A stretch of 64,000 nucleotides of DNA from Rebecca billardiae RCC1528. Its lineage: Eukaryota > Protista > Haptophyta. Shown piece after piece: positions 1,145-53,896 of the stretch. Numbering within the stretch: the stretch's first letter is position 1; each line of letters opens with the position of its first letter. The stretch is taken from positions 1,364,001 through 1,428,000 of the forward strand of contig OZ251237.1 in assembly GCA_965240325.2 (NCBI GenBank), read 5' to 3'. The position numbers were made by a program, and so were the translations under genes. The notes under the pieces were generated by a model. It was not told the DNA's origin, searched no databases, and worked only from the letters and a program-made list of their open reading frames with translations.

Positions 1145-2214
1145 AAAGATGCTCGCTCTGAGTCGCACACAGCTCAGGCAGGCGAGATTGACGCCCGCCA
1201 GTGGTAACGTCTTAACCCCTATTGTGGAACGATTTTCGGGGTTTCCGCCCCTAGGGCGAGGTAGTGCGGCTCGGCGAGCGAACTTAAGGTGTCAGGTACT
1301 GGCCATGGGTCCTACCGAAGGGACCATACACCTCTGAGGGTGCGGAGCTCGGAACTCGCCCGCCCGCGCGCGCGCGCGCGCGCGCGCCCGCGGGGTGCGT
1401 CGACGGGTCGACTGACCCCTATTGTGGAACGATTTTGGTTCCTCGCTCAGGCGGACGGTGCCACTGCTGGCTCCTGAGCGTTCGCAGTCGGCCCGCTGGC
1501 GCTCGCCGGCGCGCTGGTGGTGTGGGCACCCGCCCTCGACCCCGCAGCCGCCGGGGGGCACGTCTTGCCCGCGCGAACCCTCTCCACGATGAGTGATGCG
1601 GTCAACGAGCGTGTCCGTCATCGACGCTCGCTCGCCTTCGCGTGGCGCCTGAGCCGCCGCCGACACCACCGCTTCCAGGGCATGCTGGAGAGCGTCGAGA
1701 AGGGCGCGCCGCTGCGCAGGAAGAGAAGCGCCGCATCGATGCAGACCTGCCGCGTGGTCGGCGCGAAGCTGAGTAGCGCTATCTCTACGACCTGGTCGGT
1801 GTGCATCTGCTCGACCGTCACAGCCGCTCAGCCGCGGCTGCAGCCCCAGCGGCCTCGACGGGCTGGTCGGGTCCTTCACCATCCGACAGAGCGTGGCCAG
1901 TTGTCACGGCATATGAGCCGAAGTCGGCGACAGCTGTGCCCTCACGCCAGCTCCCCGCTCTACACACAGTCCCTGATGGCTGCATCCGGCGGGTCGTAGT
2001 CCACTCGCGCCCAGCCCGCTTCACGCGGCGCGGCTCTCACGCGGTCGGCAGGCGATGAAGCTGCTTTGCGGGGTTGGGCGTCGCCTGATGGCCCGGCACC
2101 TTCGGCTACGCGTTCATCATCGCCACCAGTCAGCTCGCGCCGCCGCACCGCCCCCCGCCGCGGCGGGGCGTCCTCGACCCTCCAACCCAGGAATCAGCCA
2201 TGCTGACCTGACCC

Positions 2215-13009: not shown

Positions 13010-13278
13010 CGTTCGAAAGCGCCCGCGCTGGGCGAGGCGAGCTGACGGTTGGCCCGTCACGTTGGCACTGCACGAGTGCTGCAACTTGGCGTGCGTCGCG
13101 CGCGCAGCCCACCCGCTGCGGGCCCGGACTTTCAGCCCGCTCCGCGGGCCGCTCGCGTCGCCCGGATTCCTCCTTGCCGCGCGTCCGCCCTCAGACGGTG
13201 GCGGCGGTGCGCACCCCGGCGACGCCCGCGCGCACACACGGCAGGCGCAATCCAAGCGCGCAGGCGGAGGGCGGCGAG

Positions 13279-16072
13279 ATGGAGCTCCTGCCCGCGCGAG
13301 AGACGCCCGAGACGCCCGCCGGCGCCTCCGCGGACGGCGAGTGCGCCGGCGCCGGTGCCGGCACGGCGGCGGCGGCGGAGGCCAACGGCGGCGGCCGCGG
13401 CAGCGAGCAGCTCGTGTCGAAGCTGCTGCTGGAGAACTCGCAGCTGACGAGCACGATCGCGCAGCTCGAGGCGGAGCTGCGCGACATCGACCCCGTCTCC
13501 CGCCGCGCGAGTGCCGACGCGGCCGCGCTCGCCGCCTCCGAGGGCGAGGGCGAGCCGCTCGCGCCCGACGGCGCGCGGCCGCCGCCGCTGAGCGGCTTCG
13601 AGGCGTGGCACCGCCGGCTGCGGGTGGCGCACGGCGCGCTGGCGCGCGCGCGCGAGGGCGAGTCGTGGCTCGAGCGGCTCGAGCGCCAGCGCGCCGGCTG
13701 GGGCCTGCTCGACCGCTTCCGCGAGCGCGAGGCGCGCTCGCGCCACCACGGCTTGGGCGGCTCGGCCGCGGGCGCGGGCGGCGGCGCGGCCGCGGGCGGC
13801 CACCCGCCGGACGAGGCGATGTCGCGGAGCGCGCGCGGGCGGGCGCGCTCGATGGGCGGGCTGCCTGCGCACACGCCGGGCTCCGCCGCGCTCAGCGCCG
13901 CGTGGCGCCGCGCCGCCTCCGCGCGCCGCACGCCCGCCGAGCGCGCCGACTCCGATCGCCACGCCCACGTCGCGCTGGCGCAGGCGCGCGCGTGGTCGCG
14001 CGCGGGCACGGACGACGGCGAGGGCAGCGAGGAGGAGGAGGAGTGGGGCGAGGAGGGGGACGAGGACCTGCCGGCGGTGAGCCTGCCCACATACGAATCG
14101 TGCGCGCGCGCGCGCGCGCCCCGCGCCGCGCGCGACCTCGGCGCGCGAGCGCGCGGACGCAACGGCTGCTGGCTGCCGCGCCGCCGCCGCGCCGCCGCCG
14201 CCGCCTGCCGCCCGACTCCGCCGTGGCGATGTGGGCCTGCGTCGTGCGCGCCGCCCGCTTGGCTCCCGCGCCGCAGGTACGACTACGTGCGGCCCACCTC
14301 GCGGCTGCGCCTCGAGGCGCTCGCGGCCGCGGCGCAGCGCGGGCGCGCCGCGCTCGAGCGCGATGCGGTGCTTGACTCCCTCGTGGCCGGCGTGTTGCTT
14401 CCCTTCCTCGTCGGTGTCGCGGTGGGCACGTCGGCGTACGTGAGCAACGCGCTGACGGACGTGCTGATCGACGTGAAGTGGCGCTGGACCTTCGCGCTGC
14501 TCCACGGCGGGCTGTGGGGCGTCGCCTCCTTCCCCGTCTTCGCCGGCTTCTGCGTCGGCCTGACGTCGCTCTCCGCCGGCATCGCGCTGCTCGCGCCCGC
14601 CGCGTGTGGCTCTGGCATCCCGCATGTGAAGGCGGTGCTCAACGGGATTCGGGTGCCCGGCACGCTGAGCGCGCGGACGCTCGGGGTGAAGCTCGTGGGG
14701 ATCACGCTCGTCGTCGCGTCGGGCGTGCCCGCCGGCCGCGAGGGCCCGATGGTGCAGGTGGGCGCGGGCGTCGGCTCGCTCGCTCTGCAGGTCTATCACG
14801 CAGCGCTCGAGCGCGGCTGGCCGCGGCGCGCGAGCACACAGCTGCGGCTGCTGGACGAGGTGCGTGGCGGGCGGGTGCGCGTGGCGGATGCGCGTGCGTG
14901 GGCGGGGTCGTGCGGCTCGGGGGCGCCTGCTCTGCGCCCCGCCGCCGCCCCGTGCCGCGCCGCGCCCGCGCCCCCCTCCCCCGCCCCGCAGCCCCGCAGC
15001 CGGGGTGGGGCGCGCACGCGCGCGCGCGCTCGCTCGCTGCGAGAGAGACAGCGCGCCACAGCGTGACACAGCGCGCCGCCTGTCTGCCGGCCTCCGCGCC
15101 GCACCCCGGCGCGCGCGCGCGTGGTGGGTCGCTCGCAGGACGACTACAAGCGCGAGTACGTCTCGATGGGCGCGGCGGCGGGCGTCGCGGCCGCGTTCAA
15201 CGCGCCGATCGGCGGCGTCCTGTTTGCGCTGGAGGAGGTGTCGACGCACTGGTGCGCGCGGCTCACGTGGCGCTCCTTCTTCGCAGCCATCATCGCGGCG
15301 GTCACGATGAACTACCTCGTCTCGGGGCGCGAGCGCGGCGTGATCGAGGACGACGCGCTGGTGGTGTTCGGCGCGTTCGACCTCGCCTCCTCCTTCAAGG
15401 TCTCCGAGCTGCCGTACTTCGTGCTCATCGGCGTGGGCGGCGGGCTGCTGGGCGCCGCGTTCAACGCCCTCAACGGGCGCCTCAACCGGTGGCGGCAGCG
15501 CGCGCGCGACAGGCCGGGCGGTCTGCTCGTCGAGCTCGCGGGGGGCTCGGTGCGGCGCGCGAAGGTGGGCGAGGCGGCGTGCCTCGCGCTGCTCGTCGCG
15601 TCGGTCTCCTTCTTCCTCCCGCTCCTCTTCGGCTGCTCCGACGCGGCCGACACCCTCGGCGGCGGCGGCGGCGACCCGCTCGCGCGCGCGGGCGGCCGGC
15701 AGATCCGCGTCGAGTCGTTGCTGGTGAGCGTGCAGTGCACCGCTGAGGGCCAGTACAACGAGATCGCCTCGATCACGCTGTCGAACCAGCACCGCGTGGT
15801 GCGCGCGCTCTTCTCGCGCAACGCGGCCGGCGCGCTCTTCGCGCCGCACTCGCTGCTCGTCTGCCTCCTCCTCTCATTCGCGCTCTCGGTGGTCGTCTAC
15901 GGCGCGGCGATGCCGAGCGGTCTGTTTGTGCCGTGCATGACGATGGGCGCGCTCGGCGGGAGGCTGGTCGGCGAGCTCGTCGCGGCGGGCGCGGCGAGGG
16001 CGGGCGCGGAGGCGGCGGCGGGCGCGGCGGCGGGCGCGGAGGCGGTGCTCGCCGCGATGCCCGCCGACGCGC

Positions 16073-16115
<43 letters not shown>

Positions 16116-17517
16116 GCGCGGCCCTGGCGGCGTGGACACTGGCTTCTACGCGCTGATCGGCGCGGCAGCCATGCTGGGGGGCGTCACGCGGATGACCATC
16201 TCGCTCGTCGTGATCATCTGCGAGATCTCGAACGACGCGGGCGCGCTGCTGCCGCTGATGGCGGCGATCCTGACGGCGAAGGTCGTCGCCGACTTCTTCA
16301 ACCCCTCGCTCTACGACGCGGCGATGGCGCTCGCCGGCTTCCCATTCCTCGAGGATGAGCCGCCACGGCGCGCGGCCGACGCGCTCTGCGCTGCGGACGT
16401 GATGACAAGCGGTGTGCGCGCGCTGCCGACGGTGGTGCGCGCGCGCGAGGCGGCGGAGGCGCTGCGCGAGAGCGCACACGCCGCGCTGCCGGTGATCGAG
16501 CGCGGACGCGCCGGCCACGGCCGCACGCTCGTCGGCTCCGTCCGCCGGTACGAGCTGTCAGCGCTGCTGCGCGCGCGCGCGTTTGTCAGGCCGGGCTCGG
16601 GCGCGCCGCCGCTGCGCTCGCGCACGGAGAGCGTCGGCAGCGCGGCCGGCGGCGGCGGCGGCGCGGGGAAGGGGAAGGGGTCGCAGCCGCCCGAGCTGCT
16701 CGACCAGCTGTCCGCCGGCAGCGCCTCCGCCGACGGCGCGCACGCGGGCTGCGCGCCCGCGCGCCCGCTGCCGCCGCCGACGCCGCCCCTCGCCACCGCC
16801 GCGTCGCCGCCGCCGTCGCCGCCCGCGCCGCCCGCGCGCGCCGCCGCGCACGCCGAGCCGGAGTGGGTCGCCGACGCCAGCCGGGTGAGCCTCGCCGAGC
16901 TCGTCGCGGAGCGGCGCCGGCTGCGCGCGCCGGCCTCCTCCTCCACCGGCGGCGGGTACTCGTTCGGCGGCGGCGGCGGCAGCGGCGCAAACAGCCGGCG
17001 CGCGTCGGCCGATCGCGCGGCCGTGTCAGCGGCGGACGGCGCGGACTCGGCGCGCGGCGCCGCCCTGCCTTCCCTCGACGCGGAGGACGCGGAGTGGTGC
17101 CTCGACCTGCGCGCGATCATGGAGCTCGCGCCGATGACCGTGCTCCCCGCCACCCCGCTCGAGCGCGTGCACCGCCACTTCCGCTCGATGGGCCTGCGCC
17201 ACCTGTTTGTGGTCGACCGCCGGCACCGGCTGCTCGGCGTCGTCACGCGCAAGGAGCTGCTGCCGCAGGTGCTCGAGCAGGAGGCGGAGGACGCGACGCA
17301 CCCGCGCGCGCACGGCGCGCTGGCGTACGACGCGCAGCAGATGCGCACGCCGGACAAGCAGCGCTCGACGCACGGCCCCTCGCCCGCCACCTCGCCCGGC
17401 CGCGCGCCGCGCGACGGCTTCGGCGCCGCCGCCGCTAACGAGTCAGATGGCCGTGACAACGGCGGCGGCGCGGAGGGCGCGGGCCCGTCGCAGATGCCGT
17501 CATCGGCCACCTGCTAG
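13279..17517 (+). CDS. CLC: CLC-family Cl-/H+ antiporter (CLC-6/7-like) with CBS domains; introns 14100-14276 and 14860-15138
   Basis: Spliced ESYDY motif, GSGIP, GREGP (gating Glu), GAAAGVAAAFNAPIGGVLFALEE, PSGLFVP, GGVTRMTISL, C-terminal CBS (FRSMGLRHLFVVD). Confidence 0.93.
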
Positions 17518-17596: not shown

Positions 17597-20221
17597 ATGC
17601 TGCAGGTCTGGAGTGCCGAGGCTTGGTATGGTATGGGCCGAATAAAAAGGGGCGCGATTCCTGGGGATTCCTGGCGCGTCCCGCCGGTCGACGTAGAACG
17701 TAGAGCCCCGCTGGCCGCGCGTCAGGGCGACGGGACGCGCTGCTGGTCGATGGTATCGACTGCGCCACCCCCAACGCCCCTGCCGCGCGCGCGCCTCGCG
17801 CTGGTGGCATGGATGAACGTGAGCGAGGCGCTCGTGCACACGATGTGTCTCCCATTCGCCCCCTTCATGGTGCAGCACCTCATCGGAGCCGACGACGCGG
17901 ATCCTCGCATCGCGTACCTCCAAGGCTGTCTGGTCGCGGCGGCCAGCCTGGCCGAGTTCGTTGGCAGCTACCCGCTAGGCTTGCTGAGCGACCTGATCGG
18001 CCGGCGGCCGGTCATTCTGCTGGCCTTATTCGCGACCACCATTTGCACGCCGGCGTTTGGCTTCGCCACCTCGTACGAGATGGCTTTTGCTGCCCGCACA
18101 GTGCGCGGGCTGTGCGCGGCCGTCACGGGTACGACCAAGACGTACCTGTACGAGATCACCGACAGCTCGAATCGCGACCGCGCGTTTAGCGTGCTGATGG
18201 CATGCTACGGCTTCGCGCTGTGCATCGGGCCGACCCTCGGCGGCGCGCTCTCCGAGCCTGCCCGCACGTGGCCGTCCACCTTCCCCAATGGCTCTCTCTT
18301 CGACCGCCACCCGTACGCGCTCCCGTGCGTCGTCGTCGCGGCGTGCAGCGGGGCGGCGGGCGTGTGCGCGTGGTTCATGCTCGCCGAGACCGTGCACCGA
18401 CGCTCCCCGTCGATCTGCTGCCTCGACACCCAGCCGCTCTTGGACAAGGGCGCCGCGGACAGCGAGTCTGGCGATGCCTCGAAGCAGTCGGCTCAGGGTG
18501 GGTCTGACGCGAGCGGCAGTGCCGCTGGGCGTGGCGGCAGCAGCGCACTCGGCCGCACCGCCTGGCTGGCCGCGGTGCTGTACGGGATGGTCGCGCTGGT
18601 GGTGGAGATGATACAGGTGCTGTGGGTGCTGTGGGCCAAGCTGCCCCTCGCCCAGCGCGGCCCGCACCTTGACGTGCGCACGATCGGCCTCTTGCAGGCG
18701 GTCGGAGGCGTGGGCATGCTCTTCTCGCAGGCGGTCCTCTACCCGCATGCCGTGCGCGCGTTCGGGCTCAGCCAGACGTTCCGCCTGGGCTGGGTCGGGC
18801 CGGTCGTCGCGTATGTGGCGATCCCCTTCACGGTCCAGCTCGCTCCGCCCGAGGGCGGGTGCTGGCCCTCCCCGTTCTGCGCGTTGCTGGCGGTGCTCGA
18901 GCTGCTGCAGATGGCAAGCAGCTCGGCGCTCTTCACCTGCGTCATCCTGATGCTCTCCAACTCGGTGCCGAGCGGAGAGCTGGGAGCCGCGAACGGAGTG
19001 GGGCAGTCGATCGCGTCCATGGCGCGCTTCGCCGCGCCGCTCTTCAGCGCTACTCTCGTCGGCCAGCTCGCCTCTGGCGCGCCTCCGCTCGACGTGCGGC
19101 TTGCCTTCTTTGCGGTGGCAGCGTTCGCGCTGCTCTCGGTGGCACTCTCGTACGCGCTGCCGCGCTCGATCGACCACGCGTTCGACGGCGCGGCATCGCT
19201 CGCTGGGGCGCCCGCGTCGCGGCGGCCGCACGACCCGAATCGTTTGCCAGCCGCGATCGAGCAGCGCATGATGTGCGCGCCGCTGGGGGCCGCTGACCCC
19301 CATGCCGTCGCGCTCGCGCGTGAGCGGCTCTCGGCGGAAGGGATGGTTGTGATCGACAAGGGCGCCGCGTTCTCCTCAGCGGACGAAGTGCGCGCATGGA
19401 GCGCGGCTCTTTTCTCGGCTGAGTATGACTACACTCGCAGCGGCGCGGCCGCTCGCGACAACCTGGGCGGCGGCGTGCTCGCCACCACCGGCAAGGCCGA
19501 GCGTTCGGCCGTTCAGCTTCTCGAGCACCCCGAGATGAGCTACGAGCGTGAGTACCCTGGGAAGCTGCTCTTTGCGTGCTTCGAGTGTCCGCCCGACAAG
19601 GCGCAGACGACGCTGCTCGAGACCAGCGCTCTGACGCGCGCGCTGCGAGGGACAGCGCTCTGGCACAAGCTCGAGGCGCACGGCCTCACCTACCACTTCA
19701 AGTACTACTCTGCGGACGAGGTCGGTCCAGGCGGCCCGCCGCCAGTCCTGCGCCCGTGGCAGGACTTCTTCGGAGTGCGCACGCGCGCTGAGCTCGAGGC
19801 GGAGCTCGGGCGGCGGCGCATGCGCGCAGAGTGGCTCCAGGGCGAGGCCGGTGTGGTGCGTGTCTCACAGACCCTGCCTGCCTTCGAGCTGGACGACCAG
19901 GGGGACTTGCGTGTGCACTTCACCCTCGCCGTTCACGGCTGCAAGTTCGACCCTGACCCCGCGTGGAAAGGCGTGGCGCACATCGACAGGCCGTATCACT
20001 TCACGCTGGGGGACGGCGCCGAGCTGACGCACGCAGAGCTGGAGCTTGTAAGAGGCATGTACGACACGCACCGCGTGCTGCTGCCGTGGGTGCCCGGCAG
20101 GCTTGTCGTGCTTGACAACCAGCGCTGGATGCACGGCCGTGTCGCTTTTGCACTCGAACCACACGAGACGCGCAAGATCGGCGTCTGCACAGGGGAGAAG
20201 CGCACACGGCGCCTCGTATGA
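17597..20221 (+). CDS. Fusion of an MFS transporter (DHA1/ZIFL-like) with a C-terminal TauD/TfdA-type Fe(II)/2-oxoglutarate dioxygenase; likely start 17750
   Basis: MFS motif A GLLSDLIGRRPV, GPTLGGAL, ELGAANGVGQSIASMARFAAP. With no stop in between, HPEMSY...PGKLLFAC and W.PGRLVVLDNQRWMHGR follow (HxE...H facial triad), about 19320-20221. Confidence 0.85.
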   Translation: MLQVWSAEAWYGMGRIKRGAIPGDSWRVPPVDVERRAPLAARQGDGTRCWSMVSTAPPPTPLPRARLALVAWMNVSEALVHTMCLPFAPFMVQHLIGADDADPRIAYLQGCLVAAASLAEFVGSYPLGLLSDLIGRRPVILLALFATTICTPAFGFATSYEMAFAARTVRGLCAAVTGTTKTYLYEITDSSNRDRAFSVLMACYGFALCIGPTLGGALSEPARTWPSTFPNGSLFDRHPYALPCVVVAACSGAAGVCAWFMLAETVHRRSPSICCLDTQPLLDKGAADSESGDASKQSAQGGSDASGSAAGRGGSSALGRTAWLAAVLYGMVALVVEMIQVLWVLWAKLPLAQRGPHLDVRTIGLLQAVGGVGMLFSQAVLYPHAVRAFGLSQTFRLGWVGPVVAYVAIPFTVQLAPPEGGCWPSPFCALLAVLELLQMASSSALFTCVILMLSNSVPSGELGAANGVGQSIASMARFAAPLFSATLVGQLASGAPPLDVRLAFFAVAAFALLSVALSYALPRSIDHAFDGAASLAGAPASRRPHDPNRLPAAIEQRMMCAPLGAADPHAVALARERLSAEGMVVIDKGAAFSSADEVRAWSAALFSAEYDYTRSGAAARDNLGGGVLATTGKAERSAVQLLEHPEMSYEREYPGKLLFACFECPPDKAQTTLLETSALTRALRGTALWHKLEAHGLTYHFKYYSADEVGPGGPPPVLRPWQDFFGVRTRAELEAELGRRRMRAEWLQGEAGVVRVSQTLPAFELDDQGDLRVHFTLAVHGCKFDPDPAWKGVAHIDRPYHFTLGDGAELTHAELELVRGMYDTHRVLLPWVPGRLVVLDNQRWMHGRVAFALEPHETRKIGVCTGEKRTRRLV

Positions 20222-20347
20222 TTTGTAGCTAGTAGTATATATATGCCTCTGGGATGAGCCCACTAGTAGTGGCTATGAAGCCTGCTATATATAAGACTAA
20301 TTTTACTATTTCAATATATATATATATATATATTATGTGACACTGTA

Positions 20348-20395
20348 ATCTCGCCTGCCTGAGCTGTGTGCGTCTCTTATTCTGAGTAAACTGTA
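20348..20395 (-). repeat. Short dispersed family C fragment (TA-CAGTTTACT...AGACGCACACAGCTCAGGCAGGCGAGAT)
   Basis: Other copies at 1160-1200, 52962-53040 and 53585-53690. Confidence 0.7.
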
Positions 20396-20476: not shown

Positions 20477-22237
20477 TCACCACAGGCTCTGGCCGCCCTC
20501 GATCACGAGGTTGTGTCCCACCATGTACGAGGACGCGTCGGACGCGAGGTACACGACCGCCGCCTGCAAGTCCGTCACCTGCGCTAGCCGCCCGGCCGGG
20601 ATCTGCTCGAGCCAAGTGGCGGCAAGCTTGTTGAGTGCGGGGTTGTCCCAGATCAGGGGGGTGTCCACAATGCCAGGCGAGATGCAGTTGACGTTCAGGC
20701 CGCGCGACGCCCACTCGCACGCGAGAGACTGCGTCAGCTTGACCACGGCCGCCTTGGACGCGTTGTACGCCGCCTGCTTCTGCGGGTGCGGCACGAGCAG
20801 CGACGCCATCGACGCCGTGTTGATGATCTTGCCGCTGCCGCGCGCGAGCATGTGCCGCGCCTCGTGCTGGCAGCAGAGGAAGACGCCGCGTGTGTTGAGC
20901 GCGAACGTGAGGTCCCAGTCGGCGACGGGCGTGTCCTCGGCGGCAGAGTTCTTGTTCACGCCCGCGTTGTTCACCGCGATGTCGAGGGCGCCCTTCCACG
21001 CCACCGCCGCGTCGACCATCGCCTTGACGCTCCCCTCGTCCGCGCAGTCGGCGCGCACCGCCATCGCCTCTGCGCCCTTTGAGACCAGCTCGGCGGCCAC
21101 CGCGTCCGCACGCGCCTGGTCCAGGTCGGCGACGGCGACGGCGGCGCCCGCCTCGGCGAGCGCGTGCGCGAAGGCGCGGCCGATGCCCTGTCCGCCGCCG
21201 GTCACGAGGGCCGTCTTGCCGCTCAGCTTGAGGCGGTCGAGGATGCGCGCGCCCCCCACGCCTCGCGTCACCTCGTCCGGGCCGGCTGCGCCGCTGGGCT
21301 GCGGCGGCGGCGCAGGGGCCGCCGCCGGCACGGGCGCCGCGGCAACCTCGGCGGTGGGCACCGGCGCCGGCGGCGGTGGCGCCGCGCCCTTCAGCCGCAC
21401 GATCGTGATCCCGTCGCGAAGCGGCAGCGTGACGATCTCGACGCGCGCGTCCGCCCTCACCATCTTGTTGAACTCGCGCAGCGCCTCGCCGCCCGCGTTC
21501 CAGCTGTGCGGGTCGTGCGCGGCGCGGCCGAGGTAGGGCACGCCCTTGAAGAGGACGTTGTCGATCACGATCACGCCGCCCGGCGCGAGCAGCCCACGCG
21601 AGAGCACCGTCTCGTAGTACGCCGCGTACGAGCCCTTGTCCGCGTCGATGAACACCATGTCAAGCGGCTGCGCCTGCGGCCACGCGCGCAGCGTCTCGAG
21701 CGCGTCGCCGATGCGCACGCGGATCTTGTGCCCGTGGGGCGACTTGTCGAAGATGGGGCGGGCAAAGGCCTCAAGGAACGGGTCCACCTCGCACGAGATC
21801 ACCTCGCCGTCCTCGGGCAGCGCCTCGGCGATCGTGAGCGCGCCGTAGCCGGTGAACATGCCGACCTCGAGCACGCGCCGGGCCTTGAGCATGTACGCAA
21901 ACATGGCGAGCGTCTTGGCCTCGACGATGTCCGTGGTCCACCGCTCGGAGAAGCGGAACACCGTCTTGCCCTGCGCGTGCAGCTCGTCCCACGGCGCGCC
22001 GCGCGTCTTCCGCTCGAGCTCGGCCGCCTCGGGTGACGGCGCAGACGTGCACTCGACCAGGTACTCGTCCAGGCCACGCGAGAGGCTGGCCGCCTCGTCG
22101 AGCAGGGCGGTGAGCCGCTCGTTGGGCGTGTCAGGCACGAACGCGACCTCCTGCGCGGACGGTGGCGCGGACGACTCCGCTTTCGCCGCAGCGGCGCCGT
22201 GCGCGCGAATGCCCGCGACCGAGCTGGCCTGCTCCAT
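20477..22237 (-). CDS. MT-Ox: Bifunctional O-methyltransferase / NAD-dependent oxidoreductase (MT-Ox, gadusol synthase type): MysB-like MT domain plus classical SDR
   Basis: MT domain: LDEYLVECTS, VLEVGMFTGYGALTIAEALPEDG, CEVDPF, SPHGHKI, DMVFIDADK, IDNVL. Pro/Ala linker. SDR: TGGGQGIG, NNAG, IINTASMASLLVPHPQKQAAYNASK, ending HNLVIEGGQSLW as I recall for fish MT-Ox. Start placed at MEQASS; the ORF extends to 22351. Confidence 0.9.
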   Translation of the reverse strand: MEQASSVAGIRAHGAAAAKAESSAPPSAQEVAFVPDTPNERLTALLDEAASLSRGLDEYLVECTSAPSPEAAELERKTRGAPWDELHAQGKTVFRFSERWTTDIVEAKTLAMFAYMLKARRVLEVGMFTGYGALTIAEALPEDGEVISCEVDPFLEAFARPIFDKSPHGHKIRVRIGDALETLRAWPQAQPLDMVFIDADKGSYAAYYETVLSRGLLAPGGVIVIDNVLFKGVPYLGRAAHDPHSWNAGGEALREFNKMVRADARVEIVTLPLRDGITIVRLKGAAPPPPAPVPTAEVAAAPVPAAAPAPPPQPSGAAGPDEVTRGVGGARILDRLKLSGKTALVTGGGQGIGRAFAHALAEAGAAVAVADLDQARADAVAAELVSKGAEAMAVRADCADEGSVKAMVDAAVAWKGALDIAVNNAGVNKNSAAEDTPVADWDLTFALNTRGVFLCCQHEARHMLARGSGKIINTASMASLLVPHPQKQAAYNASKAAVVKLTQSLACEWASRGLNVNCISPGIVDTPLIWDNPALNKLAATWLEQIPAGRLAQVTDLQAAVVYLASDASSYMVGHNLVIEGGQSLW

Positions 22238-22511
22238 GCCTTTGACTTGATTGCTCGTTGGCCGGCGATCAGCGAATTGATGAGAATGTACCTGATGAAC
22301 CTTCATCAATGTGTGCATCAACGCGTCTGACCTTCCTTTGATTCCGCGCATCCGCTACTTGATCCCTGCATGGGATGAAAAGCGGCGTGGTAATTATAAT
22401 AATAAACCATTCATTAATTAAATACCCCATAGTACGTTGAACGTGTACGGTATTTTCTCCGGACTGTCCATCCCGGGTCGGTGAACGTTCGCGCGATCAC
22501 GGAGGACGAAG
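22238..22511. promoter_or_regulatory. Putative bidirectional promoter between MT-Ox and EEVS
   Basis: About 274-bp divergent intergenic region with an AT-rich core (taattataataataaa, 22391-22420). Confidence 0.5.
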
Positions 22512-23945
22512 ATGGTGGGCCCCGCCACCTTCCAACTTGCCTGCGTGCTCCTTGCCGGCGTGCACTCGCCGCTGCACACCTCCACGCGCGTTACGGCGTT
22601 GCGCGGGCACGCCGACACGCTCGCGTTCTATGACGACGCCTGGCACGCCCACGCCGACCCATCAACCGTGCCGCCGCACGCCGTGCACTCGGCCGCGACG
22701 ATCAAGGAGGACTCGCTGCCGTCCTCCTCCTCGCCCGGGACCTCTACGACCGAGTGGGCCGTGCGCGCGCCGCTCACGTTCGAGTACCGCGTGATCGAAG
22801 CGCCGCGCCTCTTCCACCCCGACAACGACGCCCTGCTCTTCGGCCACCTCGCCCCCGGCTCGGCCGCGCGCGCGCGCGCGCGCGAGCAGCGGCAGCGGCG
22901 GTTGGTTGTGATCGACCAGACCGTCGACGAGCTGTTCGGCGACGGGCTGCGCGCGTACCTCGAGGCTCGGCGCGTGGATCACCAGATTGTCGCACTGCCC
23001 ATGCTCGAGGAGAACAAGGACGTCGACCTCGTTCTCCAGGTCGCCGAGGCGATGAAGCGCTTTGAGCTGGCGAGGCGCGACGAGCCGGTGATCGCGATCG
23101 GCGGCGGCGTCTGCCTCGACGTGGTCGGCCTCGCTGCGACGCTCTTCCGGCGCGGCACGCCGTACATCCGCGTGCCCACGACGACGCTCTCGTACGTCGA
23201 CGCCTCGGTCGGCGCCAAGTCCGGCATCAACTTCATGGGCTCGAAGAACCGGCTGGGCGCGTACGTGCCGCCCGCGGCCGCGCTGCTTGACCCGAGCTTC
23301 CTGCGCACAGAGTCGGCGCGTGGCGTCTCGTCGGGCCTCGCGGAGATGGCGAAGATGGCGCTGGTCAAGTCGCCCGAGCTGTTCGAGCTGCTCGAGGCGC
23401 ACGCCGAGCGCCTCGTCGCGCACCGCTTCCAGCCGCTCTCCGCGCGCGACGGCGTGCCCGGCCGCGTGCTCGGCCTGTCAGTCCGGCTGATGCTGGACGA
23501 GCTGGCGCCCAACCTGTGGGAGGCGTCCCTCGACAGGCTGGTCGACTTTGGGCACGTGCTCGGGCAGGAGCTCGAGCTGCGCACGCTCGGCACGGAGCAC
23601 GAGCTGACGCACGGCGAGTCCGTCGGCGTGGACATGGCGTTCATGACCGTCCTCGCCGCCGTACGCGCGCAGATCAGCGAGGCGCAGCGTGACCGCATCC
23701 TGGCGATGCTGCGCCGCTGCGCCATCCCGGTGTGCAGTGCGATGGTCGACGAGGCGCTCGTGCTCAGCGCGATGGTCGAGCGCCGCGCGCAGAGCATGGG
23801 ACAACGACTGCCACTCCCCGTCGGGGTGGGCAAGGCACGCATCTTCAACGACGTGAGCGAGGACGAGCTGCTTGAGGCACACCGCGTCTGGACCGACCTC
23901 TGCTGCACGCGACCGCCACAGGCGACACCGGCGACGCGCCGTTAG
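22512..23945 (+). CDS. EEVS: Sedoheptulose-7-phosphate cyclase, 2-epi-5-epi-valiolone synthase (EEVS) type, with an N-terminal signal/transit-like extension
   Basis: DHQS-fold motifs AIGGGVCLDVVG, RRGTPYIRVPTT, DASVGAK, KNRLGAY, GLAEMAK, LTHGE. EEVS-type fingerprint MLDELAPNLWE...RLVDFGH, whereas DDGS/MysA reads MLELExPNLHE...RVIAYGH. Confidence 0.9.
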   Translation: MVGPATFQLACVLLAGVHSPLHTSTRVTALRGHADTLAFYDDAWHAHADPSTVPPHAVHSAATIKEDSLPSSSSPGTSTTEWAVRAPLTFEYRVIEAPRLFHPDNDALLFGHLAPGSAARARAREQRQRRLVVIDQTVDELFGDGLRAYLEARRVDHQIVALPMLEENKDVDLVLQVAEAMKRFELARRDEPVIAIGGGVCLDVVGLAATLFRRGTPYIRVPTTTLSYVDASVGAKSGINFMGSKNRLGAYVPPAAALLDPSFLRTESARGVSSGLAEMAKMALVKSPELFELLEAHAERLVAHRFQPLSARDGVPGRVLGLSVRLMLDELAPNLWEASLDRLVDFGHVLGQELELRTLGTEHELTHGESVGVDMAFMTVLAAVRAQISEAQRDRILAMLRRCAIPVCSAMVDEALVLSAMVERRAQSMGQRLPLPVGVGKARIFNDVSEDELLEAHRVWTDLCCTRPPQATPATRR

Positions 23946-24321: not shown

Positions 24322-25317
24322 ATGCTCTACGCTGTCACTGGCGCGAACGGCTTCATCGCCTCCCACGTGGTGAGCAAGCTGGTCGAGCAGGGCCACAAGG
24401 TGCGCGCAACGGTGCGCAAGCCCGACGACGAGGCCAAGCTCGCCCACCTCAAGTCGCTCGGCGCGCCGGTCGAGATCGTCGTGCTCGCCGACCTCACGTC
24501 CGCAGAAGAGGTGGCGCCCGCGCTCAAGGGCTGCGACGGGCTCTTCCACATGGCGGCGGTGCACCCGACGTACGGCTTCGAGGAGACGCCCGAAGGCGCC
24601 GATGCGATCATCGCCCTCGCGGTCGAGGGCACCAAGGCGGTGCTCAAGGCGGCGGCCGCCGCGGGCGTGAAGCGTGTCGTCCTCACGAGCTCACTCGCGG
24701 CCGTCGAGTGTGGCAACGACACGGGCGTGCTGACCGAGGCGACATGGTCAAGGGAGGAGGTGTACAACAGCTCAACATCGACGCAGTGGAAGACGCATCA
24801 CGCGTACGTCAAGTCCAAGACGCTGCAGGAGCGCGCCGCGCTCGCCGCCGCCGCCGAGCTCGGGCTCGACCTGCGCGTGATCGCGCCGGGCAACCTATGC
24901 ATCGGGCCAATCCTCAGTACACACATCAACGGCACGATGACGCGCGTGCGCGACGTGGTGCAGGGCTCAAACACGCTGAAGGGCTGCGCAGACCTCGGTG
25001 TAGTCCACGTCTCCGACGTCGCGCACGCGCATGTCGCCGCGATGACCACCGACTCCGCAAGCGGCCGTTACATCGTCGCGCAGAGCATGGTGCGGCTGGA
25101 GGACGTGTTCAGTGCGCTCAAGGAGCTCTGCCCGGACCGGCCGGTGGCGCCGATGACGAACATGGACTACGCGTCGGGCACGCCGGGCAAGGCGCGCGCG
25201 ATTGAGAGCCGCACCGAGGCTGAGCTGGGCGTGCAGTACGTGCCACTCAAGCAGACGCTCAAGGAGGCGGTCGACTCGATGGTCAGCAAGGGCTTCATCC
25301 AGGCCGCCGCCGCGTGA
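24322..25317 (+). CDS. Extended SDR: NAD(P)-dependent reductase/epimerase, dihydroflavonol-reductase / cinnamoyl-CoA-reductase-like
   Basis: VTGANGFIASHVV, VRATVR, FHMAA, KRVVLTSSLAAV, catalytic YVKSK, VHVSDVAHAHV, GRYIV. Confidence 0.88.
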   Translation: MLYAVTGANGFIASHVVSKLVEQGHKVRATVRKPDDEAKLAHLKSLGAPVEIVVLADLTSAEEVAPALKGCDGLFHMAAVHPTYGFEETPEGADAIIALAVEGTKAVLKAAAAAGVKRVVLTSSLAAVECGNDTGVLTEATWSREEVYNSSTSTQWKTHHAYVKSKTLQERAALAAAAELGLDLRVIAPGNLCIGPILSTHINGTMTRVRDVVQGSNTLKGCADLGVVHVSDVAHAHVAAMTTDSASGRYIVAQSMVRLEDVFSALKELCPDRPVAPMTNMDYASGTPGKARAIESRTEAELGVQYVPLKQTLKEAVDSMVSKGFIQAAAA

Positions 25318-26118: not shown

Positions 26119-27600
26119 TCAGTCGCCGTTCTCCTCCGTCATCTTGCCGATGCACAGGTCGACCTTCGCCCAGCGGTTGCCCGACCACACGTTGCGTGCG
26201 AGCAACACGGGCACGTGTACGCAGTGCTGCGCGATGAATGGCAGCGGGTCAGCAGCGTCCCAGTACGCGTCCTTCTTGCTTGCCAAGATGTGCAGCGCTG
26301 CGCGCGCGCGCTCGAGCACCGAGAGCCCGCGCGGCGCGAGCACCTCGTAGTACAGATCGGCCAGCGTCCAGTTCACCTCCTCCGCGGCCGGCACCGGCTG
26401 CACCGCGTCCGCGGGCGCGTCCGCGTTGGCCGCCATCGCGCTCGGTTCCGCGAGCAGCGCGCGGCCAAAGTCGGCCATGTTGCGGTGGTACGAGGTGACG
26501 TTGGACGAGAGCCGTGGGTTGCACTCGATCGCGCGCGCCACGCCGTCCTCGCCGACGAAGAAGTCGATGCAGACGATGCCGCTCAGCTTGTACGTGCGCA
26601 CGAAAGCGCTCACCCAGTTGAGGATGGCCGAGTTGCCCGCGTGCGTGTAGTTGAAGCACGAGATTGAAGCCTGGTTGTCCGTGAAGGTGAGCACGCGCCC
26701 GTCAGTGCACAGCGCGCACGAGGAGTACTCGACGCCCTCGAGCACCCCCTGCACGAGCCACGGCGCCTCCGCGCTCACGGCGAGCCCCGAGACGTACGCG
26801 CGCAGCTGTTGCTCCGCACACGGCAGCTGGAAGAGGTCGAGCCTGCGCATCGGGTCGTAGTTGCACGACTTGAGCAGGTAGCGCTTGGGCGAGTGGCGCG
26901 GGAGAGCGGCGTTGAACGCGAGGATCTCGTCCATCGAGCGCATCCGCTGCGTGTCCGGCATGGGCAGCCCCGCCTCCTTCGCCTTCCGCGCGAACACGAC
27001 CTTGTCGTCGAGCGCGAGCACGTCCTGCTCACAGAGCGACCAGCTGCGCACGCCCGGCGGGAGGCGCGAAAAGGCGCGCGCCTCGTACCGGCTGGCGGAG
27101 GGCGAGGTGACCGGCACGACGAGACTTGCGCCCTCGCGCTCGACCAGCTCGCGGATCGCGCGCTCGAACGCCTCGGACTGCTGCTCGGGGACAGGCACCG
27201 TCACAAACCTGTCCACGTGCATGGAGAAGCGCGACGCCACCATCCAGTACTTGCGCGTCTCGACGAGGATGACGCGGCAGCCCGCGGCGCGGAGCGCGCG
27301 GCACATGACGAGCGACTTGGTCATCTTACCGCCCGTCACGATCGCCGTCTTGCCGTTGAGCGCCAGCGGGCGCTTGCGGGCGCGCGTGCGCAGCCACTCG
27401 AGCGCCGCGCCGACGATCGCAGCCGTCACGACAAGGGGCGCGAGCATGGCGAGGCAGCCGAGGCAGAGCAGAGACCACGCGCGGGGCTCAATCATGTCGC
27501 GCAGGGAGCGCGCATGCGTTGCCACCGGCGAAGCCTCGCCCTGCTGCGCGCGCAGCGCATCCCCGACTCCGCGCGGCTCGACTGTGCAGGGCAGGCACAT
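26119..27600 (-). CDS. mysC: ATP-grasp ligase MysC (mycosporine-glycine synthase type); start 27600 or 27495
   Basis: N-terminal hydrophobic segment, TGGKMTKS...GCRVILVETRKYW...RFS..VDRFVTVP, PVTSP, LDDK..F, YLLKS..YD..RRLDL..LP, AIECNPR, DPLPF, and C-terminal W.KVDLCIGKMTEENGD, all typical of cyanobacterial MysC. Confidence 0.92.
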   Translation of the reverse strand: MCLPCTVEPRGVGDALRAQQGEASPVATHARSLRDMIEPRAWSLLCLGCLAMLAPLVVTAAIVGAALEWLRTRARKRPLALNGKTAIVTGGKMTKSLVMCRALRAAGCRVILVETRKYWMVASRFSMHVDRFVTVPVPEQQSEAFERAIRELVEREGASLVVPVTSPSASRYEARAFSRLPPGVRSWSLCEQDVLALDDKVVFARKAKEAGLPMPDTQRMRSMDEILAFNAALPRHSPKRYLLKSCNYDPMRRLDLFQLPCAEQQLRAYVSGLAVSAEAPWLVQGVLEGVEYSSCALCTDGRVLTFTDNQASISCFNYTHAGNSAILNWVSAFVRTYKLSGIVCIDFFVGEDGVARAIECNPRLSSNVTSYHRNMADFGRALLAEPSAMAANADAPADAVQPVPAAEEVNWTLADLYYEVLAPRGLSVLERARAALHILASKKDAYWDAADPLPFIAQHCVHVPVLLARNVWSGNRWAKVDLCIGKMTEENGD

Positions 27601-27831
27601 CGTCGTCAGAATCGTCGGGAGACTTCGAGAATACTACTACAGTCTTACTACTAGGAATCATCTATCGATCGATATGAGGAATCCGAGCGCGCGGGAAAAG
27701 CTGGTACAAACGCGCGGATTCTCACGTCCTCGAGTCGCCCCGTGCCGTCCGGACAGGCCAGGGGAGAGACCGAGAGAGGGAGGACCACCCCAGTTCTCCA
27801 GGATCGTGATCCTTCCGCGCCGTGCGCGACG

Positions 27832-28974
27832 ATGCCAGCTGCCGAGGACAAGATGCGCGTGGTGCATCTGATGGGCTCCGCCGTGTCGGCGTACTACGAG
27901 AGCCTGAGCACATTCTACGCGCAGGGCTGCGTCGACGGCGCGCAGGACGAGCTGACACGCGCCCACTTTGACTTTGCGTTTGCGATCGTGCACGCGACCG
28001 CGGATGGGCCGCGCTGGTCGTTCCCAGCCGAGCTCTCCGAGAAGGCGATCGCGGCCGCGCCGCGTCTGACGCACGCGGAGGGTGTCCAATGCCTTGCCGC
28101 GATCGACGCCGACGTGTGCGTGCCGCACATGTTCTGCTACCCCGGCATGACCACCTATCGCGCCCTGCTCGACATGCTGGGCGTGCCGATCCTGGGTTGC
28201 CCGCCGGCGTGCATGGCGCTGGCGACGGACAAGTTCCAGACGCGCGCGGTGGTCGCGGCGGCGGGCGTGCGCGTGCCAACGGGCGAGCTCCTCCGCGCGG
28301 GCGAGCGCCCCAGCCTCGCGCTTCCCTTCGTGCTCAAGCCGTGCCGCGAGGACAATTCTATGGGCGTCTCGGTCGTGCGCCGGCCAGAGGAGCTCGACGC
28401 GGCGCTCGCCGAGGCGTTCCGCTTCGACGAGCGCGTGGTGTGCGAGCAGTTTGTGCCACCCGGCCGCGAGATCCGCTGCGCCGTGATCGAGGACGAGCAC
28501 GGCGAGCCCACGCGCGTGCTGCCGTGCCTCGAGTACTTTCTGAGCGAGGAGCACCCGATCCGCACGCCAGGGGACAAGCTGGCGAGCAGCGAGGACGGCA
28601 AGGTGACGGGGCTCGCGTCCGGAGCGCGCAAGTGCCCGGCGGAGCTGTCGGACGAGCTGCGCGCCAAGCTCGCGGATGCCACGATCCGCTCCCACCGCGC
28701 ACTGGGCTGTCGCGACTTCTCGCTCTTCGACTTCCGCGTCGACCCGGAGGGTGAGGTGTTTTTTCTCGAGGCGTGCCCGGTGTGCTCCTTCTCGCCAAAG
28801 AGCGTGATCGTCTCGCTGGCGGACGCGGCGGCCGACGCGGATGTGGCGCACCCGGCGCTCTTCCACACGCTGCTCCGCCGGGCAGCTGGACGAGGCCAGA
28901 AGGCCAAGCCCAAGGCCAAGCCAGACGAAAAGCCAGTGCAGGTCTTTGGCATGCATGCAGACTGTGCGCGGTAG
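27832..28974 (+). CDS. mysD: D-Ala-D-Ala-ligase-like MAA ligase MysD (shinorine/porphyra-334 synthase type)
   Basis: RVVHLMGSA...YESLS.FYAQGC, W.FP..LS, VPHMFCYPGMTTYRALLDMLGVP, AAAGVRVP.GELLR, KP..EDNSMGVS, GREIRC, ALGCRDFSLFDFRVDPEG..FFLEA, FSPKSVI. Confidence 0.92.
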   Translation: MPAAEDKMRVVHLMGSAVSAYYESLSTFYAQGCVDGAQDELTRAHFDFAFAIVHATADGPRWSFPAELSEKAIAAAPRLTHAEGVQCLAAIDADVCVPHMFCYPGMTTYRALLDMLGVPILGCPPACMALATDKFQTRAVVAAAGVRVPTGELLRAGERPSLALPFVLKPCREDNSMGVSVVRRPEELDAALAEAFRFDERVVCEQFVPPGREIRCAVIEDEHGEPTRVLPCLEYFLSEEHPIRTPGDKLASSEDGKVTGLASGARKCPAELSDELRAKLADATIRSHRALGCRDFSLFDFRVDPEGEVFFLEACPVCSFSPKSVIVSLADAAADADVAHPALFHTLLRRAAGRGQKAKPKAKPDEKPVQVFGMHADCAR

Positions 28975-52202: not shown

Positions 52203-53896
52203 GTGGCGCCAGGCTCGCGCGAGCTCCCCAAATCTCCTTGAGCGTCTGGCAGCTCTCGGCACTGGTGCCCGCGCGGCGAACCCCGCGGGGCAGGAGAAGC
52301 CGTGGCGGCAGCCAACGAACGTGCATCATCGGACTCATCCGCCCCCACCACGCATCATTCATCAGACGTCGGCAGCTGGGCCACAGCGCTTGCTGGCGCG
52401 CAGAGCGGCTCGCCGGTCGCTGCCCGAGACGCCTGCTGCCACCGGGCACGGACAGTCGGTGATGACACAGGCGGCGACTGCTCGTCGCTCGAGTGCTTCG
52501 GTCGTCGGTGCCCACCGGCGCCTGTCGGCGTCGCCAACGCATGGGCAGGGGCCGCGGGCACGGTCATCGGTGCAGGGGACGCGCGTCGCGTTGGCCAAGC
52601 TCCCCGAGGCCGTTGAAGAGCACACGCCCATCATGCACGTTGGGCCACTCTCCCGCGAATCGGGGCGCGGCAACTCACGCTCACCCCGATTCACGCATGC
52701 ACCTGCATGCGCTGCCGTCGCAATGTCATCGACTGCGTGCTTGACTTTCCCGGAGTCGAAGTGAGCACATGCAGAGCCATCACGCTGATTCGGATTTCGG
52801 TGCCGACTCTGAGTCTGAGACTACTGTACTCTGTAGAAGTTGAAACGGTCATTACGAATTACGAATACGATGACGGCCTGCTTAGCATTATATTGGCCGG
52901 ACGATTCACAATGATGTGTCGTGCGTGGCTGCATGATGCGAAGATGATGATTATTACTGTATACAGTTTTTACGACTAAGAATAAGTGCCAGACGCACAC
53001 AGCTCACTGCTCAGGCAGGCGGCGAGATCGACGCCCGCCAACTGCCACTGGCAACTGTCACCGCCCATGAACTTGACTAGCCGTCGCCGATGGCTGCGCC
53101 GCCGGACGAAAATTCAGCGTATTCTTAACTGCTACGCTACGCGTACCCCCATACTACACTTTACTGAGACTACTCATGTTTTTTACCATACCCGGTTAAC
53201 CCCCATACTCCGTACTCGGATACTGCTCGGATGACGGATTACGTCAACGGGGCTTGGTCCGGTGCCCGGTGGTCCGGACTCCGGACCACTCAGGGGGGGC
53301 TCCGGGTGATCACAGATCCTAAGTGACTACTGGTGGCTAAAGCCTCCTAAGCCCTACCCTGGCCAGCCCCCAACCAACTTCCACCAACCCCACCCAACCT
53401 CAAGGCCACTGACCGAGACCGGCCTAGTGGTCCTAGTGCCCTCTGCCCTGACACCACTCCGCCCCGTGTGCCTGTGGACAGACAGCCCGCCTCCTAAGAG
53501 GCGGGGCGGGGTGAGTATGCCAATGTTGCCAACTAGCCGACACCGACTCGCCCATTCTTAATTCTATGATTTCACGACATAGGTAATCTCGCCTGCCTGA
53601 GCTCACAGACACACTGGCGGAGCTGTGTGCCGCCCGAGTGCGGAGTGTGCGTCATCACTCATCTCTTATTCGTACTGCTTAGTAAACTGCATAGGTAGGA
53701 CGGCGCAGGTCTCCAGGTGATTCCGATTCCGATTCGTCACGAAGACAATCAATCATCGGCGCATCCGATCGAATTCTCAAGTCGGCGCTGATCTACAGGT
53801 CACAGATCTGAAATTCCTGATGAGTGATGACGGCCGCCCCCCGCCGGTGCGGCCACTGGCCGACTTGGAGAGTGATACTATTCAGTGATAGTGCGC

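Follow-up and report, generated by a model that had tools for sequence, protein, structure and literature searches.

The gene described here lies in a stretch of 64,000 nucleotides from the haptophyte Rebecca billardiae RCC1528 (GenBank assembly GCA_965240325.2, contig OZ251237.1, positions 1,364,001 to 1,428,000 of the forward strand), referred to below as the window, and it joins a transporter of the major facilitator superfamily (MFS) to a TauD-type Fe(II)/2-oxoglutarate (2OG) dioxygenase within one open reading frame (ORF). The fusion is very probably real at the level of the DNA, and its architecture is a new combination of known parts. The gene stands at the edge of a group of genes for sunscreen synthesis, and the explanation preferred here, although tentatively, is that one chain of transporter and dioxygenase serves both the tailoring and the export of a compound of that pathway.

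Reading frame and domain structure

The features of the fusion gene, numbered by position in the window and by residue of the reported ORF, are the following.

17597..20221, plus strand: ORF as reported, 874 aa, stop included, with no internal stops
17750..20221, plus strand: likeliest coding sequence, start at M52, 823 aa, 2472 nt, chosen because the GC content of third codon positions (GC3) rises only from about aa 41-61
17813, plus strand: alternative start M73, the choice of the gene callers for the Logan-contig proteins P0001 and P0172
17750..19159, plus strand: MFS transporter domain with 12 transmembrane (TM) helices and a disordered central loop at aa ~270-315 (Pfam, hydropathy, AlphaFold model)
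17978..18010, plus strand: MFS motif A (GLLSDLIGRRP) in the TM2-TM3 loop (invariant G/S/D/G/R/R/P columns in the alignment with the nearest MFS relatives)
18209..18244, plus strand: TM5 motif G-x5-GPTLGG, which fits the core of "motif C" of drug:H+ antiporters (DHA) (G160/P161 invariant in the MFS alignment)
19160..19264, plus strand: linker, aa 522-556, about 35 residues, predicted to be disordered, codon-biased (GC3; pLDDT < 55 where the MFS model ends and where the TauD model begins)
19265..20218, plus strand: TauD/TfdA-fold Fe(II)/2OG dioxygenase domain, aa 557-874 (Pfam, homology to the standalone protein P0002, model, match to At3g21360)
19454..19456, plus strand: R620, invariant, aligned to the loop residue Arg92 of SqoD, a 2OG contact (alignments)
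19526..19534, plus strand: H644-P-E646, the first two iron ligands, in HPEMSY (from aa 644); invariant columns, aligned to the HHE of At3g21360 and SqoD
20114..20140, plus strand: DNQRWMHGR (from aa 840) with N841, H846 as the third iron ligand, and R848 (invariant columns)
20171..20173, plus strand: R859, invariant arginine and probable ligand of the 2OG C5-carboxylate, a role taken from the TauD family

The window is rich in GC (60-86%), and since long ORFs are common in this DNA of roughly 70% GC, the length of the frame alone is no proof of coding; indeed, an antisense ORF of 425 aa overlaps it. The codon positions are more informative. From about aa 50 through to the stop, linker included, GC3 stays at 0.8-1.0 against 0.3-0.7 for the second codon position (GC2), and at the junction between the two halves (aa 521-560) it holds at 0.80-0.92 with no dip. 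This signal is missing from the first ~50 codons, so that translation probably starts at M52 (17750) or M73 (17813). As far as the sequence can tell, the gene needs no intron, because the TauD part matches its relatives in an unbroken alignment.

Further support for the frame comes from the Logan contigs of the runs ERR14847148, ERR14847150 and ERR14847151, which are colinear with the window over the whole gene at 99.1-99.96% identity. The frame of 802 codons that opens at M73 is intact in the contigs of all three runs, with 1-2 amino-acid changes. These contigs carry flanking intergenic DNA and stop at a repeated element; they look genomic and have no bearing on transcripts. The comparison of the run assemblies for the ratio of non-synonymous to synonymous substitution (dN/dS) gave 2 differences within the frame, both non-synonymous, which are too few for statistical power. 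The original prediction, in which an MFS permease runs on into a TauD domain without a stop or an obvious intron, is borne out by the 874-aa frame, the three runs and GC3. The fusion gene would give a single mRNA and a single polypeptide.

The N-terminal part is matched by the Pfam models MFS_1 (E 3.9e-24) and Sugar_tr, both above their gathering scores. The two halves were modelled separately, and the AlphaFold model of the MFS half (pLDDT 79.6, pTM 0.80) contains 12 long helices. Membership of the superfamily is indicated by the 12 TM helices, arranged in two six-helix bundles, together with motif A, all of which are present. In TM5, the GP-x-x-GG core of motif C of the DHA1 family is found with its upstream Gly shifted; the meaning of this motif is well established for the DHA families. 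The best named matches of the MFS half are DHA1/Tet-like proteins, NorA, MFSD10 and VMAT, all of them weak and far below curated cut-offs (for instance, the Tet(A/B/C) model scores 71 bits, while its cut-off is 475). A word search with the MFS half alone returned distant DHA1-like matches only; the copies of this half in the assemblies of the other runs were the sole close ones.

DHA1 antiporters such as Tet(A)-like proteins, NorA, MFSD10/TETRAN and VMAT share with the algal protein the 12 helices, motif A and the TM5 GP-x-x-GG, and provide its best family and structure matches, but they differ from the fusion, which bears an enzyme domain at its C-terminus. In resemblance, then, the named MFS relatives are all efflux or vesicle-loading antiporters and not uptake symporters. 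Because there are 12 helices, the C-terminus is placed on the cytosolic face by the modelled fold and by the established architecture of MFS proteins; it would lie on the same side as motif A, so that the dioxygenase is inferred to be in the cytosol.

The C-terminal part is matched by the Pfam model TauD (PF02668) at aa 631-864 (E 1.5e-8, 35.3 bits versus a gathering cut-off of 27), and homology to its relatives opens at about aa 555, at the Met-Met pair M558/M559. The AlphaFold model of this half (pLDDT 86, pTM 0.86) supports a double-stranded beta-helix fold, with 260 PDB matches at E<=1e-3 and TauD-family enzymes filling the top matches listed. Residues R620, H644, E646, W721, P799, N841, H846, R848 and R859 (ORF numbering) occupy invariant columns among 20 relatives. 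They include H644, E646 and H846, the HxE...H iron triad that had been recognized at the outset, and this triad aligns to those of the PDB entries 1Y0Z and 9YUT. With the facial triad and the 2OG arginines intact, the enzyme half looks active.

The best match of the dioxygenase to a solved structure by sequence is At3g21360 (PDB 1Y0Z; E 2.6e-12). The same protein is the best match by fold, with a Z score of 28.1 and a root-mean-square deviation of 2.6 over 287 residues, the next scores being ~19.6 (PlaO1, TauD and others). The second match by sequence is the sulfoquinovose dioxygenase SqoD (PDB 9YUT-9YUX), at E 3.2e-8 and with low identity over 240 residues. Judged by its modelled fold, the algal dioxygenase is nearest to the branch of At3g21360 and sulfoquinovose dioxygenase. 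It shares with both enzymes, at only ~22% identity, an H-x-E-M motif, the loop arginine of GAA-x-R and a distal H-x-R; however, these are soluble, standalone enzymes, whereas the algal domain is fused to a transporter. In SqoD, Gln120 binds the sulfonate and Arg92 contacts 2OG (PMC12951627). The former, which follows H-x-E-M, is replaced by Tyr649 in the algal domain. Moreover, SqoD and At3g21360 are 38.6% identical to each other, a closeness to SqoD that the algal domain does not show.

Uniqueness of the fusion and relatives of the dioxygenase

An exhaustive HMMER search with the TauD domain against 1.84 billion representative proteins gave 923 matches, and the best 150 of these 923 were listed. 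Among those 150, the fusion protein itself is the sole case of an MFS domain joined to TauD, in agreement with the original view of the architecture as unusual. Of the longer matches, the 10 that were scanned with Pfam proved to be tandem TauD proteins or proteins in which a condensation domain of a nonribosomal peptide synthetase (NRPS), a thioesterase or an ATP-grasp domain is joined to TauD. A length-matched word search with the full-length protein recovered the fusion protein only, one with the TauD domain alone gave no match, and no relative emerged when metagenomes were scanned with the TauD pair alignment. No orthologue of the fusion outside the source organism was found in the word searches, the HMMER listing or the metagenome scan, and a literature search on MFS-dioxygenase fusions returned nothing relevant. 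In these searches the MFS-TauD join is so far unique, which is not proof of its absence from all databases.

The closest relative of the dioxygenase, among the matches listed, is P0002, a standalone protein of 392 aa with 46% identity (E 3e-71) and a hydrophobic N-terminal helix. It is encoded at nt 158-1336 of the Logan contigs L003/L004 from the runs ERR14847148 and ERR14847151. The contig has a GC content of 0.66 and a GC3 of 0.85, the same as the fusion, and carries the same intergenic repeat as the window. Because of the shared runs, the shared GC and GC3 and the shared repeat, P0002 most likely represents a paralogue encoded by the same organism; on the same grounds (runs, GC, GC3 and intergenic repeat common to the fusion), the idea that it is a homologue from a related species was rejected. 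The N-terminal helix of P0002 resembles a signal or an anchor, and the contig measures only 1.4 kb, so that no neighbouring genes are visible. The helix was also considered as a remnant of TM12, an idea that was discarded for want of any detectable similarity to TM12 of the fusion.

After P0002, the relatives show 27-36% identity and are bacterial or metagenomic, including proteins from Eionea flava (36%) and Candidatus Kentron. The TauD gene of E. flava belongs to an operon of catabolic appearance, whose other genes encode a LysR regulator, an aldehyde dehydrogenase, an Fe-dependent alcohol dehydrogenase (Fe-ADH), a transporter of the BCCT family, a CoA-transferase and a protein of the enolase superfamily. 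An enolase-superfamily (MR_MLE) gene lies directly upstream of the TauD relative on 2 unrelated contigs (L005 8790-11041 and L096 5727-8137), and this pair looks like a conserved two-gene module whose substrate is possibly a betaine or an amino-acid derivative. Regarding the other bacterial TauD relatives, one is found in a polyketide synthase (PKS)/NRPS cluster with two MatE pumps, and others are isolated genes. No function is transferable to the fusion from these bacterial relatives.

Sunscreen genes and their known oxygenases

The fusion gene is separated by 256 nt from a convergent gene for MT-Ox, and it forms part of an 11-kb run with five sunscreen genes. Its neighbours in the window, on both sides, are as follows.

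13174-15066 and 15121-17517, plus strand: ClC chloride-channel gene with CBS domains, in at least 2 ORFs
20477..22351, minus strand: MT-Ox (O-methyltransferase plus short-chain dehydrogenase/reductase), second step of gadusol synthesis (domain scan)
22512..23945, plus strand: EEVS-type sugar-phosphate cyclase
24322..25317, plus strand: NAD(P)-dependent reductase of the Epimerase/3Beta_HSD fold
26119..27600, minus strand: MysC-like ATP-grasp ligase (34% identity to Nostoc MysC)
27742..28974, plus strand: MysD-like D-Ala-D-Ala-ligase-type enzyme
1174-1190 (plus), 20346-20362 (minus) and 53584-53600 (minus): repeated intergenic element of ~25 nt with the core TCAGGCAGGCGAGATTA, 3 in the window versus 0 expected

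Some additional observations were made on these neighbours. The ClC gene holds very long low-complexity inserts rich in Ala, Gly and Pro, in DNA of 76-86% GC. Within the 3' coding part of this gene, the match between the ERR14847150 contig (L001) and the window is lost entirely on the upstream side of 17259, over nt 1-145 of the contig; these 145 nt are richer in AT and absent from the window, and the divergence could be a structural variant of strain or haplotype or an assembly join. The copy of the TCAGGCAGGCGAGATTA element at 20346-20362 sits in the intergenic gap between the fusion and MT-Ox genes. The element is also present at the end of the P0002 contig (L003 nt 12-28), and the Logan contigs L001 and L107 stop either at the element or shortly beyond. 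A signal for 3' ends is one possible explanation of the element, a small repeat or mobile element another.

The combination of an oxygenase and a transporter is known from bacterial clusters that make mycosporine-like amino acids (MAAs). MysH, an Fe/2OG oxygenase of the PhyH family, converts disubstituted MAAs to palythines. The MAA cluster on a plasmid of Nostoc HK-01 comprises mysA-B-C, a PhyH (MysH-like) gene, mysD and an MFS gene, and it thus confirms the earlier statement that MFS and MysH-type genes occur within cyanobacterial MAA clusters. A counterpart of MysH from the TauD/TfdA family, MysI of Nostoc sp. UHCC 0926, has been proposed to hydroxylate the glycine arm, leading to palythine-type products (PMC10510106), a chemistry that the original interpretation also had in view, and conserved genes for HAD and TauD/TfdA proteins have been reported in actinobacterial MAA clusters (PMC11888242). 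Bacterial MAA clusters repeatedly encode both an Fe/2OG oxygenase and a transporter, each in a gene of its own, which by analogy makes a role of the algal fusion in the neighbouring cluster plausible.

For the comparison with MysI, the MysI-like protein of Nostoc sp. NMS7 was used as a stand-in for that of UHCC 0926. On plasmid pn1 of the latter strain, there are 2 TauD places, both linked to NRPS genes, and no TauD in the last 200 kb; mysI was not located. A scan of 80 cyanobacterial mysC loci recovered the MysI-type gene order in Nostoc sp. NMS7, where a locus of the metagenome-assembled genome (MAG; L024 2619-11356) encodes a MysF-like O-methyltransferase, an EamA transporter, a MysI-like TauD protein, a MysE-like NRPS and MysC. 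A TauD gene on a plasmid of Pseudonocardia alni was also followed as a lead to an MAA cluster and was rejected, as it is linked to NRPS genes and lies outside any MAA cluster.

The NMS7 protein aligns to the algal domain over 81 aa only, with 25% identity (E 4e-4). In a dioxygenase tree built with FastTree, it grouped with NRPS-linked SyrP-like enzymes (support 99), while the algal domain paired with P0002 (support 100) in another clade, made up of standalone enzymes (support 98). Since MysI sits on a long branch, its precise position is uncertain; even so, there is no support for orthology between it and the algal domain. In a MAG of Coleofasciculaceae (L089 3473-4198), an ORF of 241 aa from the TauD family lies between mysB and mysC and has a very long branch; it may represent another independent recruitment of TauD into an MAA cluster.

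The algal dioxygenase can be set against each of the known types. It resembles MysI in belonging to the same Pfam family and in being encoded at a mycosporine cluster, and MysI likewise has a transporter neighbour in Nostoc NMS7; however, MysI is a standalone enzyme that travels with the MysF methyltransferase and the MysE NRPS, whereas the algal cluster has no NRPS or Methyltransf_2 gene and has MysD instead. With MysH it shares the cofactor chemistry and the location at an MAA cluster, MysH being encoded beside an MFS gene in Nostoc HK-01. Nevertheless, MysH belongs to PhyH (PF05721) and the algal domain to PF02668, with no PhyH match, and at most the two are functional analogues. The prediction of a "non-orthologous MysH analogue" stands as to the lack of orthology, but with MysI the literature already contains the idea of a TauD-type enzyme that takes the place of MysH in such clusters. 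The SyrP-type, NRPS-associated hydroxylases form a clade separate from the algal domain, and NRPS genes are absent from the window. Language-model and shape searches named SyrP-like clusters, simply as the nearest large clusters. The description as a "TauD/SyrP-like domain" has thus to be divided: TauD is sustained by Pfam, fold and triad, and SyrP-like is not.

A metagenome scan with EEVS gave 8 loci of 37-39% identity and 52-57% GC, which are bacterial, and the other cluster genes occur in 0/8 of them.

Possible functions of the fusion protein

According to the preferred explanation, one membrane protein of ~88 kDa would be translated from a nuclear gene with a single exon (most likely 17750-20221). 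A 12-helix, DHA1-like MFS proton antiporter with a cytosolic C-terminus would be followed by a flexible linker of ~35 residues and by a catalytically competent Fe(II)/2OG dioxygenase. Positioned where the transporter opens to the cytosol, the dioxygenase would have as its substrate a mycosporine derived from gadusol, or an intermediate, and would oxidise it, either adding a hydroxyl group or cutting off an N-linked amino-acid arm, the reaction proposed for MysH and MysI. The product would next be cleared from the cytosol by the MFS part, which would carry it either through the plasma membrane or to a vesicle or vacuole. In this way, one polypeptide would do the work of the separate dioxygenase and transporter genes of bacterial MAA clusters. 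A point in favour of such a substrate is that the nearest solved relatives include SqoD, which acts on a six-membered polyhydroxylated ring.

Several observations weigh against this explanation. The algal domain is not orthologous to MysI, MysH or SyrP, and the closest bacterial relatives of the dioxygenase occur in varied contexts, with no mys cluster among them. As for the gene itself, adjacency is the sole sign that it belongs to the cluster, at whose edge it lies in a compact genome, and on its other side there is an unrelated gene, that of the ClC channel. The MFS part shows no specific similarity to the MFS protein of the Nostoc HK-01 cluster (E 0.17), and the direction of transport is read from weak family similarity only.

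The main rival explanation, which is less than probable but deserves serious consideration, accepts a real fusion and separates it from the sunscreen pathway: the protein would couple the transport of some other polar metabolite (a sulfonate or sulfosugar, a betaine or an amino acid) to its oxidation, for scavenging or turnover, and MT-Ox would be a neighbour by chance. The classic role of TauD/TfdA enzymes is catabolic, SqoD ranks second among the solved relatives (E 3.2e-8), and the relative from Eionea flava is encoded among BCCT, CoA-transferase, enolase-superfamily, aldehyde dehydrogenase and LysR genes, with the MR_MLE-TauD pair recurring elsewhere. The position at the cluster edge, with the ClC channel beyond, and the existence of P0002, a standalone probable paralogue outside the window, point the same way. 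On the other hand, the MFS part is like efflux and antiport families and not like uptake symporters, the Gln120 of SqoD is replaced by Tyr, and a dioxygenase and a transporter have been combined repeatedly in bacterial MAA clusters.

The remaining alternatives concern the gene product and the gene itself. A continuous frame in the DNA might yield two products, an MFS transporter and a separate dioxygenase, by internal initiation of transcription or translation at M558/M559 or by alternative processing. The Met-Met pair is situated exactly where homology to the standalone P0002 opens, and a standalone form is present in the same sequencing runs; however, the MFS part has no stop codon anywhere before 20219, the linker retains a coding-type GC3, the ~100 nt between TM12 and the domain are too short for a terminator plus a promoter, and the frame is kept in the three run assemblies, all of which makes two products improbable. 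Much more improbable still is an artefact, in which two genes read through into each other by chance, the assembly is faulty, or a pseudogene is decaying in DNA whose high GC leaves few stops. Such DNA does yield long spurious ORFs, and the architecture has been seen in one organism only, but the same junction occurs in the three run assemblies at 99.1-99.96% identity, both domains are complete with all key residues and confident folds, and the codon bias is uninterrupted.

Returning to the one-chain protein in sunscreen tailoring and export, its more specific versions have to be regarded as unlikely. Palythine-type chemistry in particular is a guess with the odds against it. The boldest version, a speculation of low probability, takes the protein as an enzyme-exporter chimera that would channel the last tailoring step of a eukaryotic gadusol-based pathway into export or vesicular storage. 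A conjugate would be converted into a palythine-like or hydroxylated product and handed directly to the pore, by an oxygenase that would have been recruited from the sulfosugar-acting branch, independently of MysH and MysI. A known transporter-enzyme fusion for comparison is the bacterial LplT-Aas, in which an MFS lysophospholipid flippase is fused to an acyltransferase/acyl-ACP synthetase. It resembles the algal protein in that an MFS permease forms one covalent unit with the enzyme acting on what it transports; however, the enzyme class and the substrate are different, the origin is bacterial, and transport there feeds the enzyme.

Should the fusion prove unrelated to the cluster, it would still represent an unusual transporter-oxygenase architecture, with a substrate worth finding. 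If, by contrast, it is one chain and acts on the product of the cluster, mycosporine chemistry would have recruited an Fe/2OG oxygenase independently for a third time, MysH and MysI being the earlier two. The protein would also offer a natural example, of a kind rarely met, in which an enzyme of biosynthesis is covalently joined to its exporter, with direct use in engineering yeast to secrete gadusol-type sunscreens, and it would provide a concrete candidate for the transport of these compounds in algae, a matter that is poorly understood.

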